NCBI RefSeq assembly: GCF_003918875.1
Contig: NW_025767102.1
Location: 682,001 to 746,000, forward strand
DNA from: Haliotis rubra
Lineage: Eukaryota
Length of the DNA: 64,000 nt
Reading direction: 5' to 3'
Shown: positions 58,719-64,000 of the stretch, piece after piece
Layout of the letters: each line of letters begins with the position of its first letter
Position numbering within the stretch: position 1 is the stretch's first letter
The notes under the pieces: model-generated
Told to the model about the DNA's origin: nothing
The model's input: the letters and a program-made list of their open reading frames with translations, nothing else
The model's database searches: none
Made by a program: the position numbers and the translations under genes

Positions 58719-59981
58719 CGCACTCAGCAACATTCCCCCTCTATGGAGGCGGTCTGTAAGTAATCGAGTCTGGACCAGACAATCCATTGATCAACAGCAT
58801 GAGCATCGATCTACGTAATTGGGATATGATGACATTTATGTCAACCAAATCAGCGAGCCTGACCACCCGATACCGTTAGTCGCCTCTTAGGACATGCATG
58901 GGTTACTGAAAATCAATATTTTAATTCTAACCCTGATCTTCACGGGTATCTTAAAGACGCAAAACCAAGTAAATGCATTACATTCAGAATCTACAAACAA
59001 GACGTCATTCAAAAGTGTGTTTATTATAAAATTCACAAAACCAGATGATAGACAAATATGTACATGTATATTCCATATCTGACCTTGACATGTTCTTTAA
59101 CGAAGAAAGTCTTTCCGAGTAAATAACAGGTGCATAAAAAAATTGGCAAAGTAAGTCCAGCAAAATAACTGCACTCGACCTTGCCTTCGAAATTCACTGT
59201 CGAAAAATGCATCCTGGCGTTTTTTATCAATTACTTTATTAACAGATTCTTAATTTCAGAACCGTTCTTTTTTCCTTCCATCCGATTCCGTTCAGAAGAA
59301 TAAACTTCAAAGTAAGCCAGCAGTGGAAAAGAGTAAATTAATCCTTTGACATATCATAAAAAAATATTTTCAATTCTGTTTCTAATCCACAGTTTCTTTA
59401 TCACGCCCAGCCAAACACAATTTGAAAGATACAGTTGAGTTTCTTTTAAAAAACACAGAAATTTTAATTTGACCAAGGACTTTTTGAGAATCTGCGAGCC
59501 AAGTAATTAAAAAAACGTTTCTAATGGATTCAACAGAAGAAAAAGTTTAAATTGGTGAAATCTTTCTTTCTTGCTTTGTGGTTGGCAATATAAACGAAAA
59601 AAGGTTACACAACACAATGACAGCATTGCGTAAGACTTATATACCATTAAAAAAAGTAGGGGATATTCCATTTTGCGAGCATACCACGAATGCCAATGCC
59701 AATGCATATGAGAAAAGTAATATATATCCATACAGATGAAACATTTCCAAAGGAGTGGAATAAATTGTCACATTTTCCCTTAATTTCTCTTCATCATATG
59801 TTTCCTGCTTGGCTTCATCATTTGCATTTTATCAATCTTAAAATTCCAATATCTCCTACTGTTTTTGGATGGAATAATATATCCAACCGACACAACTTGC
59901 ATCATCCTTGACCACTCGTCTCTTTCCGGTACAGATGACGGAAACACGCGAGTGGTGACGAACATATCCTGGATTTTGGAA

Positions 59982-60097
59982 TCACAGCTTATTGGTAATA
60001 TCCTTCTTCAGGGTAATACCCTTCGTTTTGACAGACTGGGTATTTGGCTGCTGTGCGCTCTTGGACCTCCTGTTTACTATGTACTGGCAGTACTGGT
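59982..60097 (-). CDS. probable last coding exon of the secreted peptide/EF-hand precursor (YQYCQYIVNRRSK...NKL*)
   Basis: ttgttttcag acceptor with phase 1, matching the exon 3 donor; AATAAA downstream at ~59235. Confidence 0.55.
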
Positions 60098-60179
60098 CTG
60101 AAAACAATACAACAAACATGAATTCGAGAGCCTTGTGTTGCTTTTTCGTTGAAATTAAATTCGTTGTGTATGCATAATA

Positions 60180-60276
60180 TACTGAGGGAAAAAATAAGGG
60201 ATCATATGAAAGCACAAGTGTTCCTTTATATTTTTCCAGGTTTCTTTCATGTGATACCTTATTTTTCCCCTCAGTA
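60180..60276. mobile_element. ~100-bp Tc1-like MITE in intron
   Basis: TIRs TACTGAGGGAAAAAATAAGGGATCA / TGATACCTTATTTTTCCCCTCAGTA. Confidence 0.75.
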
Positions 60277-61577
60277 TATCACCTGAATATTTCTTTATAT
60301 TCTTGTAAAGTATCATACTTTTGAAATGCTTTCAAGAAACAGAATTCAAACTAACGTTTTTGTTTTGATAGGCGTAGGTCCAAAACAAATTCGACTTATT
60401 GTGTCCGAGTATTTACAACGAGCGGTTCCAGAAGAACAGTAGAATGGTGCCCACTCAGAAACGATTCCTGAGGTTAAGACATGCATATAGGGCTCCCGTT
60501 TTAGAAGGTTAATCTTTGCGCAAAGACACGTTAAGTACACGTTAAAGTAAAGGAACCATGATCGTCTAAACGCTGGGTTCGCTGAGATCGTTGCTACACA
60601 TTGACGTGGAGCCTCAAGTACATACAAGACGTTTGGCATTCCCCAATAGCTACAACAGGGGATCTGTCAGAAGAAATAAGGTTACAATGAACTTGAAATT
60701 AATATTCATTTAAAAGCAACCCCATTATAGTCATACGTCCCATTAGTCAGACGTCTTAAAGAAACACATGTGATGGTTGATTGCTCTTACATGTGAACCC
60801 TTAGTACCTATGTAGGTAATGGAATGGCCTATATGAAACGAAACAAATTTAGCAAGAATTAGCACTTTTGAGTCATTATCAAAATTCGTGCATATTTCAT
60901 GTAGGCAAAAATTGTAAGTTTTGTGCGCTTGTTTGGAGTATTCTGAATATACAAAACATAAATTATGCATTTTTCATATTTAACCCTTATCATTAATAGA
61001 AATTTCAGGAAATTGCGTCACTACCGTTACGATGAAAAGAAAAAAAATCAAAAACTGATATCATTAATGTACATATATATTGGAATATCTAGTTTTACAA
61101 TATAACATGGCTAATGAGTTTTATAATTATATATTTATTGCTTAAAAGGGGCCAACAAGCCAAAACATCACTTTCATTTCTGATTTGCAAATATAAAGTA
61201 ATATGTAGCAAAAAATTCAAAATGAGAGTATAAATTATTTTATGCTTAATTGAAGCTCTACTACCAAACATACTTGCACTACAAGTTCCAAATATAAACA
61301 GATAAATCAATCATAATTAAATAAGGAAAATGGTAATGTTATGGTATGTATAGTGGTATTATTGTTGCGGTGACACAATAACGTAGTGACATTTTTTTAA
61401 TAATAGCCAGTTTTATATGTTTACTTTAAAAGCTGATTTAATGGAATTTATTAGTCAGATATTTCAGGATGTTTAAAGAATATCTAATAGACAAAAGATT
61501 TACTTAGATGTCTTTTCATACAGTATCCTGGTACCCCAACTGATGATGAATAAATGAAACACGCATTCACAACTTAC

Positions 61578-61652
61578 AATCGTTATCGTTGAGATCCATC
61601 TCGAACACAAACGGTCCTCCATATAGTTCGCCAGATGTGAGGACATTATCTC
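61578..61652 (-). CDS. exon 3 of the precursor: completes the second EF-hand (GDNVLTSGELYGGPFVFEMDLNDND)
   Basis: gatttgcag acceptor in phase 1 joins DIN-G to DNVLTSGE; GTAAGT donor. Without splicing the frame ends CKL* at 61567. Confidence 0.85.
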
Positions 61653-61807
61653 CTGCAAATCGAAATTATATAATGAAACATTCATATGCATTCATGTACA
61701 CAGAATTCTATTTGTACATTTGGTGAATGTCTTCTGACTTCAAATACACTGCAAATATCAATATCCCCTTTGACAGTTCTCCAGCATCCTAGGCTTATGG
61801 TAGGACG

Positions 61808-62100
61808 GTTTGTTTGTTTGTTATTTAACGCTACACCCAGCAATACTCCAGCCATATGACTGTCTTTCACTGACGAGTATGGACCAGACAGTCCAGTGAT
61901 CAAAGCATGAGCATCAATCTTCGCAATCGGGATACGATGACTTGCGTCAACCAATTCGGCGAGCCTGACACATGTCATCATATCCCAATTACGTAGATTG
62001 ATGCTCATGCTGTTGATCACTGGATTGTCTGGACCAGATTCGATTATTCATTACAAACCGCCTCCATAGAGCGGGGATATTGCTGAGTGCGGCGTTAAAC
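61808..62100. mobile_element. two 5'-truncated family A SINEs joined head-to-head (fold-back)
   Basis: 61808-61968 is minus and 61965-62100 is plus; they meet at TGACACATGTCA. Confidence 0.75.
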
Positions 62101-62149
62101 AATTTGCAACAAACCAACCAAACCAAGTAACCAACTCTCCTGAACATGG

Positions 62150-62371
62150 AGTGAGTGAGTGAGTTTAATTGTACGCCGCACTCAGCAATATTCCAGCTAT
62201 ATGGCGGTGGTCTGTAAATAATCCAGTGATCAATATCATGAGCATCAATCTACGCATTTGGGAACCGACGTGTCAACCAAGTCAGCGAGCCTGCCCACCC
62301 GACCCAGGTAGTGGCCTCTTAACACAAGCAGAGGTTGATGAAGATCAATTCTTACCTGGTTTTCATGGGTA
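62150..62371 (-). mobile_element. headless SINE family A in intron 2
   Basis: (GAGT)n tail; 5' end CCCATGAAAACC. Confidence 0.8.
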
Positions 62372-62496
62372 GCTTCCCAGTAGCACTATATAAGAGCACA
62401 CATTGTAGCAAAGAGAAATGAACAACATGCCTATCCAAAGAAGTATATTTTAGTCGCAGCTGACAGATATGTTGTTTATGCATATTATTCCCATAC

Positions 62497-62659
62497 CATT
62501 TATGTCGGCAAGTCCGAAGACCGTCTTGAGGTCATTCTGGTCCATCGTATGTCCGGTAACAAAGGCGAATTCCTTGACACTGACCACCCCATCGTCGTTG
62601 AGGTCATAGGCTGAGAACTTGTTAGGCATTGGCATGAGATGTCCGCTGTAGTCACTGCC
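62497..62659 (-). CDS. exon 2 of the precursor: EF-hand domain
   Basis: gaacag|GGC in phase 0; FSAYDLNDDGVVSVKEF (canonical EF loop) ... VFGLADIN-G|GTATGG donor. Confidence 0.88.
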
Positions 62660-62991
62660 CTGTTCATGTAGAATGTGTGAGTGAGTATGCTTTTACGCCG
62701 ACTTTAGCTGCAATATTACGGCGAGGGACACCAGACATCGGCTTCATTATACCCATATTGGGAATCGAACTAGAGTCCCCGGCGTGACGAGAGAACGCTG
62801 GAACCACAAGGGCACCCCACTAACGAACGCAAGGGGACCACTAATTTTAGATCGTTATAACCACAGTTCGCTACACGTATTTAGACTCAAATATACAGCA
62901 AATGGCAGGGACAAAAGAAACAGTTCGTAAAATCCGTCATTTCGTTATAAGCGTGTTCGATACAAACGTAGTAATTGCAAGTACATATTAC

Positions 62992-63279
62992 CTTTCTAAT
63001 AGAACGCTTTCCTCTGTTGCAAAGTGGCACACATACGAAGGGACAGAAGTACATGCCGACCTTGTCTTCACAGAGTCGGGGACACGCAGTCCTGCAGCCA
63101 ATGTTCATGGTCTCATTGACAGCTTTCAGACCAACATTAAGCAGATCTTTGGCCATGTTCTTTCCCATGTTTGTAAACTCCCGTCCGAGGTCCTGCCACA
63201 TACTCCCCAGAAACGCTTGTGCTGATTGGCCAAACACAAGCAGAGTTGCGCCAATCAGGATACTGTTATACAACTTCAT
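62992..63279 (-). CDS. first coding exon of a secreted prepropeptide: signal peptide, amphipathic helix, C-x3-C-x3-C-x8-C-x3-C-x3-C, GKR site
   Basis: ttccag|ACACCATG start context; hydrophobic leader ending AQA; AAG|GTAATA donor. The spliced 4-exon CDS is 642 nt (213 aa). Confidence 0.88.
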
Positions 63280-64000
63280 GGTGTCTGGAAAAATACAATC
63301 GTAAAAAAAGTAAAGGTTTTGGACAGTTCTTAATATTTCTATTACTCGAGCGGCTTAAGACAATACATGCTCACTCACTCAACCACTCCGACTTTGATTC
63401 TAAAGAGATATGTCGTACAAGAATGAGGGAAAAGTCAAGCTAATTCAACAATACTACATGACTTGAATGAGTTTGGTATATGGCCGCTTTGAACAGTATT
63501 ATGGCGGCATAGCGGCTTAATGATCGAGTAGTGAGTGAGTTTAGTTTTACGCCGCTTTTATCAATATTCCATCAATATCATGGAGGGGGGCACCAGAAAT
63601 GGGCTTCACACATTGACCTATGTGGGGATTCGAACCCGGATCTTCTGCGTGACGAGCGAACGTTTAACCACCAGGCTACCCCCACCGCCCCCTAATGATC
63701 GAGTAAGTCCAGCTGAAGCTGGATAGAGGTTTACATGTATCACAAACGAAGAATAATATTCAGGATGAATCGTACATTTGAACCCACGATCAGCGGATCC
63801 TGGTGCGGCTAAGAGACGCAGCCCTGAATTGAATTGTAGCTTAGACCATTACCTCACCATTGTAACCTCCCGCATTAGATCTTATTTTAAAAACACACGC
63901 ATACACTGGCATACACAAGTACACGCATGCAATTGCACAAGGCTACTGTTCTGTTGTCGAAACACCAGTATCCTGATGCATACCAAGTTTTGCTTGTTTG

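Follow-up and report, generated by a model that had tools for sequence, protein, structure and literature searches.

The stretch of DNA analysed here (the window, 64,000 nucleotides of Haliotis rubra, contig NW_025767102.1, positions 682,001 to 746,000 of the forward strand) carries, on its minus strand between 63279 and 59982, a gene of four exons for a protein of 213 amino acids (aa). All exon borders read from the window DNA follow the GT-AG rule, the intron phases of 0, 1 and 1 are compatible, and the coding total is 642 nt, corresponding to 213 aa. A preliminary description made from the letters alone had proposed this four-exon model and had pointed out that the list of open reading frames (ORFs) splits the gene and misses exon 3. 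Both statements were borne out: the gene appears in the list as three separate ORFs, none of which covers exon 3, and the model agrees with the splice borders, the phases, the exon translations and the database, since the four-exon product is identical letter for letter to XP_046581063.1 (P0003, H. rubra, 213 aa). All the sequence motifs quoted earlier were likewise reproduced by exon-by-exon translation. The window exons were translated one by one, and the full-length protein analyses used XP_046581063.1, which was reached via the cluster of a Haliotis rufescens protein matched by a word search with the exon-1 ORF. The exons are the following.

63279-62992, minus strand: exon 1, 96 whole codons, ending AAG, donor gtaata
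62659-62497, minus strand: exon 2, 163 nt, acceptor ...aacag, ending ATG, donor gtatgg
61652-61578, minus strand: exon 3, 75 nt, acceptor ...ttgcag, ending T, donor gtaagt
60097-59982, minus strand: exon 4, acceptor ...tttcag, stop codon TGA at 59984-59982

The protein falls into two parts that are separated by a furin-type site. The N-terminal module (N-module) comprises a helix region and a module with six Cys, and the C-terminal domain (C-domain) contains two EF-hands.

63214-63279, minus strand: ATG and signal peptide (residues 1-22, ...SAQA, then F), which has a hydrophobic core and whose residues at -3 and -1 are small
63097-63213, minus strand: amphipathic helix region, residues 23-61, beginning FLGS, net charge 0
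63016-63096, minus strand: six-Cys module, residues 62-88, Cx3Cx3C, 8 residues, Cx3Cx3C (CRTACPRLC-x8-CPFVCVPLC)
63004-63015, minus strand: R89-G-K-R92, furin-type R-x-K-R, with the Gly placed for possible amidation of R89
62992-63003, minus strand: SIRK, the last four codons of exon 1, adjoined by the GT donor
62497-62659, minus strand: in exon 2, an H-x-x-P linker, EF-hand 1 (loop 62570-62605) and the start of EF-hand 2 (loop from 62506)
61578-61652, minus strand: in exon 3, the remainder of the EF-hand 2 loop (to 61627) and a family-specific GPFVFEMD...D motif
59982-60097, minus strand: in exon 4, a Y-x-Y-C-x-Y motif with C179 (60087-60089), a variable basic tail and the stop codon (59982-59984)

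The 22-aa N-terminal signal had earlier been taken to mean that the product is secreted, and this agrees with the Lottia orthologue, which was flagged as carrying a signal and as extracellular by Mann et al. 2012. The best 18-residue stretch of the helix region has a hydrophobic moment of 0.66. Within the helix lies an N55-x-T57 sequon (63109-63117), which reads NET or NQT in 5/5 Haliotis and is absent in Gigantopelta and the limpets. The six-Cys module belongs to no Pfam family, the exon-1 matches to TIL (E 0.032) and Cdd1 (E 0.079) falling below the cut-offs, so that the Cys framework is as unrecognised as the preliminary description had it. The EF-hands are the sole part of the whole protein that Pfam recognises (EF-hand_5, PF13202, 30.3 bits against a cut-off of 25.9). 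Their loops, DLNDDGVVSVKE and DINGDNVLTSGE, are both canonical 12-residue loops, the second being interrupted by intron 2, and a profile of the C-domain matched calmodulin and calcineurin B lobes in the PDB at 1e-7 to 1e-10, a generic match. Judged by its sequence, the C-domain is a canonical EF-hand pair and is predicted to bind Ca2+. The seventh Cys, C179 of the Y-x-Y-C-x-Y motif, does not vary and lacks a pairing partner in its own chain; it may link two chains into a dimer or stay free.

The locus is confirmed as a real four-exon gene for a two-part protein. Three other Haliotis genomes (H. rufescens, H. asinina, H. cracherodii) have all four exons with their order kept, and a Logan contig has exon 1, which brings the further Haliotis sources to four. 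The ratios of nonsynonymous to synonymous substitution (dN/dS), Nei-Gojobori estimates for the other Haliotis against H. rubra, were 0-0.02 for the Cys module with RGKR (dS 0.16-0.68), 0.09-0.22 for the helix region and 0.07-0.09 for exon 2. The C-terminal tail of exon 4 gave 0.2-0.4 and is the fastest-evolving part of the protein; here the H. asinina model, with 204 aa, is missing seven residues of the basic tail as compared with the other Haliotis (L012:12110-12205). The conserved order of the exons in three other Haliotis genomes, together with the low dN/dS, argues that the gene is not a product of chance, and the values for the N-terminal module indicate a coding region that is strongly constrained and not diversifying. 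In H. rubra the gene is single-copy, because the orthologue profile, run on the species' own 1.38-Gb genome, returned the four exons at the window coordinates only; no paralogue and nothing further above noise came from these own-genome searches.

Relatives outside Haliotis were obtained by a search with the C-terminal part followed by full-length alignment, and came from Gigantopelta aegis (P0006), Patella caerulea (P0007) and Lottia gigantea (P0010). The Gigantopelta homologue is 41% identical over the full length; the H. rubra protein matches it at 1e-56 and the Patella homologue at 1e-39, and the Lottia protein matches the family profile with an E of 5e-49. The four genera have in common the succession of signal, basic or amphipathic helix, six Cys, R-x-K-R, H-x-x-P and EF pair, and also the C-terminal layout GPFVFE-D...D-x-x-YC-x-Y with the seventh Cys, followed by a variable tail. 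Invariant in 7/7 aligned sequences are C62, C66, C70, C79, C83, C87, R89, K91 and R92 on one side of the predicted cleavage site and G163, P164, V166, F167, E168, D170, D175, Y178, C179 and Y181 on the other. By tblastn, the same four-exon structure was seen in Lottia (two genes), Gigantopelta and Haliotis, with exon 1 always ending four residues past KR and intron 2 always lying within the second EF loop. The Lottia protein is UniProt B3A0Q5 (EFCB1_LOTGI, LOTGIDRAFT_230492, Lotgi1|230492). On the strength of these sequence comparisons the H. rubra gene is the abalone orthologue of EFCB1 and a member of the EFCB1 family. The novelty that the preliminary description had seen in the protein is thereby largely answered. 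The matching names suggest that RefSeq named the abalone gene after the EFCB1_LOTGI entry; literature searches by accession and by locus tag returned nothing.

The limpet and abalone proteins also differ. EFCB1_LOTGI has a short N-module (48 residues) that is Arg-rich and carries a net charge of +14, with an inner Cys loop of 4 residues versus 8 in the abalone, and its C-domain ends in a D-rich tail, at a net charge of -17. Lottia has a head-to-head tandem paralogue (Lotgi1|230493, 208 aa; L014:1188-2728, minus strand) in which the four exons, the six Cys and the RGKR all recur; in Haliotis the gene is present once. Searches with the N-terminal part reached less far. When the profile of the Haliotis N-module was run exhaustively against 1.8 billion representatives, it gave only Haliotis sequences plus two weak matches (P0008 and P0009), and in the ESM Atlas the whole protein gave generic EF-hand clusters only and residues 23-92 nothing usable. 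P0009 is a repetitive membrane-like protein and was judged spurious. P0008 is a repeat protein of Batillaria attramentaria (L004:6512-13526, GCA_018292915.2); it was not counted as a relative, with an hhalign probability of 45% and a profile E of 1.9e-5 summed over four repeats. It is built of two-exon units, each with a peptide of ~75 residues that starts FLES.. right after KR and carries a twin Cx3C (CETAC, 12 residues, CPF[IL]C) like the inner four Cys of the abalone module, and no EF-hand exon lies near the repeats. P0008 may be distantly related, or it may be a helical-hairpin polyprotein that arose by convergence.

In Lottia, EFCB1 is a protein of the shell. It was detected in the shell matrix by mass spectrometry with 12-14 peptides and 72-75% coverage, and the paralogue was detected there too (Mann et al. 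2012, PMC3374290). In the re-analysis by Mann and Edsinger 2014 (PMC4094399), who refer to the protein as EFCB1, it was detected again, and by their account an independent study had identified it as well. The shell-proteome paper on the scaly-foot snail and Gigantopelta names EF-hand domains in general terms only. Abalone themselves have other secreted EF-hand shell proteins, among them Hdh-SMP5, which combine a signal with EF-hands, are expressed in the mantle and have been linked to shell formation. Hdh-SMP5 was considered as a relative and rejected; it belongs to a different family, has 134 aa and lacks both the six-Cys module and R-x-K-R.

Then, is the protein cut between its two halves? 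Convertase cleavage after the Cys module, as proposed in the preliminary description, is supported by the R-x-K-R site, which is invariant in the 7 aligned members and present as RGKR also in the Lottia paralogue, and by the distribution of Lottia peptides over gel slices. The counts are a re-reading of a subset of the supplement rows of PMC3374290, from three acid-soluble data sets. In that gel, slice 1 is the top, slice 3 lies at ~103 kDa, slices 4-5 at ~57 kDa and slice 6 at ~45 kDa, and slices 11-12 hold the lowest masses (PMC3374290). Three peptides are listed for the six-Cys module of Lottia EFCB1, namely NVACNHACPR, QGVCKLACNLGCR and LACNLGCR. Together they account for 13 spectra in slices 1-7, 4 in slices 8-10 and 22 in slices 11-12, and the C-domain for 120 spectra in slices 8-10 and 13 in slices 11-12. 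For slices 8-10 versus 11-12, the N-module and the C-domain differ with a Fisher p of ~3e-14 in the rows listed, and no RGKR-spanning peptide occurs among those rows. The Cys peptide of the paralogue was found in slice 12 only, whereas the spectra of that protein overall were in slices 6-8 and 12. These data show that in the limpet shell most of the Cys module occurs apart from the EF-hand domain, as R-x-K-R cleavage predicts, and for the abalone protein they make the same cleavage probable. Pif, from the nacre of Pinctada fucata, is split at an RMKR site, and its two products both remain in the shell, where they cooperate. It resembles the abalone protein in its R-x-K-R site and is otherwise a far larger protein with unrelated domains (VWA and chitin-binding), but its processing offers a precedent for R-x-K-R cleavage of a shell protein.

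The preliminary description had assigned the EF-hand part the role of a pro-domain or carrier. This does not fit what was found: across gastropods the EF-hand part is the better conserved half, and in Lottia it is a stable component of the shell matrix, both of which argue against a mere carrier. Amidation had been proposed as well. A Gly precedes KR in Haliotis, Patella and the two Lottia genes (RGKR); in Gigantopelta the site reads RVKR, so that amidation would not be family-wide; the tryptic ...GCR peptides of Lottia fit an amide and an acid alike. C-terminal amidation of R89 in Haliotis is possible on the evidence of the motif.

To examine the fold, AlphaFold2 (AF2) models were made. With an alignment of 7 sequences the mean predicted local distance difference test score (pLDDT) was 50.6, and the EF pair, at 74-81, was the sole region above 70; with 5 sequences the mean was 32. 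In the N-module of the 7-sequence model a helix extends to residue 71 and is followed by a three-residue turn and a second helix at 75-86, with pLDDT of 51-56. It is plausible from this predicted hairpin geometry that C70 would pair with C79, C66 with C83 and C62 with C87. Paired Cx3C motifs that staple antiparallel helices occur in plant alpha-hairpinins and scorpion kappa-KTx, and Aplysia attractin is a molluscan helical hairpin with three nested disulfides. The abalone module has three Cys per predicted helix versus two in the Cx3C hairpin peptides, and no sequence relation to any of the peptides named.

In H. rubra the N-module has a net charge of +2 and the C-domain one of -2; the corresponding values are +5 and -3 in Gigantopelta, +15 and -15 in Patella and +14 and -17 in Lottia. 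The two charges roughly cancel in each lineage, among only three or four independent lineages, and this tracking suggests that the two halves co-evolve. The limpet N-modules are Arg-rich, cationic (+14/+15) and amphipathic, with hydrophobic moments of 0.86-1.12, and between lineages the peptide half ranges over 47-87 residues in length and +2 to +15 in charge. A complex prediction for N-module and C-domain scored 0.18 (mark 0.34), which is evidence neither for nor against an association.

Based on these results we favour, with moderate confidence, the reading that abalone EFCB1 is a secreted two-part precursor, that is, a processed Ca2+-binding matrix or extrapallial protein with a co-secreted N-terminal peptide. 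After removal of the signal, a furin-type convertase would most likely cut after R89-G-K-R92. The first product would be a peptide of ~67 residues with the amphipathic helix and the six-Cys module, its C-terminal Arg perhaps amidated, and the module would probably be a helix-turn-helix held by three nested disulfides. The second would be a 121-residue Ca2+-binding protein with the EF-hand pair, the acidic family motif and one free Cys. Both products would be exported, as in limpets, where both reach the shell matrix, and the EF-hand half, far from being a throw-away pro-region, would have a function of its own, binding Ca2+ where the shell is formed. The preliminary description had listed a shell-matrix protein among its alternatives, in brackets, and that is the reading which orthology to EFCB1 backs: given this orthology to a limpet shell protein, a processed shell or secretion protein is likelier than a new defence peptide.

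Several observations weigh against this reading. Shell occupancy is established for Lottia only, and a shell role in the abalone is a candidate one, as yet unproven. The protein-level evidence is from Lottia; for the abalone, the tissue in which the gene is expressed and any part of the protein in mineralisation are presumed. In the covered part of the shell-proteome supplements for the greenlip abalone (H. laevigata), 0/5 tryptic peptides of the abalone protein were found (PMC6003135), and the EF-hand entries there are other proteins. In Lottia itself EFCB1 is minor, at 0.048% of the shell proteome by intensity-based absolute quantification (iBAQ) (PMC4094399), and at such a level its incorporation into the shell could be incidental. 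Some of the Lottia N-module spectra listed lie in slices 1-3 and 7-8, and the helical-hairpin fold was predicted at low AF2 confidence only.

A wider proposal, which we put forward tentatively, is that in several early-branching gastropod lineages (Vetigastropoda, Neomphaliones and Patellogastropoda) one conserved gene yields both a peptide of a class not yet described and the EF-hand partner of that peptide. An amphipathic helix would be joined in the peptide to a triple-stapled helical hairpin, usually with an amidated Arg, and the two products would work as a complex within the shell or on its surface, perhaps as a built-in antimicrobial or a crystal-modulating agent. It is the charge tracking of the two halves that suggests such a complex.

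Could the gene instead encode a host-defence precursor of the mytimycin type, in which a cationic stapled peptide is active and an anionic EF-hand region neutralises or escorts it? Mytimycin precursors of mussels do share with the abalone protein a secreted Cys-rich peptide, a dibasic site and a C-terminal EF-hand extension. The parallel, which had been drawn correctly at the outset, extends to the layout alone. Mytimycin is built on a framework of 12 Cys and forms a multi-isoform family in bivalves. The abalone module with its six Cys is unlike the mytimycin pattern, the two having been compared by description and not by alignment, and no mytimycin or mytimycin-named relative occurred among the matches of the EF-hand-part search or of the full-length-profile search. 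The same order of parts and the conserved dibasic site speak for defence, and so do the limpet N-modules of +14/+15 with C-domains of -17/-15, a classic combination of cationic peptide and anionic pro-piece. In Haliotis, however, the peptide is only +2, with 0 in the helix part; the gene is single-copy without diversification, with a dN/dS of 0-0.02 in the Cys module; and a conserved N-glycosylation sequon sits within the helix. These features are a poor fit to an arms-race defence peptide or toxin, and what would be the pro-region is better conserved across gastropods than the peptide and endures as a protein of the shell. The defence or toxin role first suggested for the Haliotis peptide is therefore not supported by its charge, its copy number and its strong purifying selection, and we regard this explanation as unlikely.

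Rather less probable still is that the abalone protein is secreted uncleaved and works as a single chain, with the six-Cys module serving for structure or binding and RGKR lying in a surface loop. This explanation can draw on the N-module spectra listed in higher-mass slices of the Lottia gel and on the Gigantopelta spacer, which has 20 residues from the last Cys to KR. It would leave unaccounted for an R-x-K-R that is invariant across deeply diverged lineages, and the listed Lottia N-module peptides are nearly absent where the C-domain peaks, as is likewise the case for the paralogue. Least probable, and in our view a poor candidate, is an amidated signalling peptide or hormone precursor of neurosecretory or endocrine cells, which would suit the G-K-R amidation-type site, the single copy and the very strong conservation within Haliotis, but not the variation of the peptide half between lineages (47-87 residues, +2 to +15), which a receptor ligand would rarely tolerate, the missing Gly in Gigantopelta or the presence of both halves in the limpet shell.

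Some further features were seen around the gene. A pyrimidine-rich tract ending in AG (ttccag) lies at 63280-63290, five bases before the ATG; because of its position just before the ATG, the start codon is probably preceded by an intron in the 5' untranslated region, and the first exon, upstream of that intron, is probably non-coding. A short interspersed repeat occurs several times within intron 2 (61809-62263), direct and inverted, with arms of 44-50 nt that are 84-91% complementary, and a further copy lies upstream of the gene at 63530-63578. ARAGORN found no transfer RNA gene in 59800-64000. The gene next upstream of the H. rufescens orthologue contains the SPO16-type Pfam family SCRE; at the corresponding place in H. 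asinina and H. cracherodii lies a divergent gene of similar length, 232-236 aa.

The abalone gene is now tied to a family with protein-level evidence in limpets. The gene and its family were already known; the conserved six-Cys module, the invariant convertase site and the gel evidence of cleavage are undiscussed in the EFCB1 literature examined. The six-Cys peptide is small enough to be synthesised and tested. For shell formation, EFCB1 would be a second example, after Pif, of a convertase-processed shell protein, and for those who search for new peptides it carries a caution, namely that a layout resembling a defence precursor can be that of a matrix protein in which the 'pro-domain' is conserved better than the peptide.

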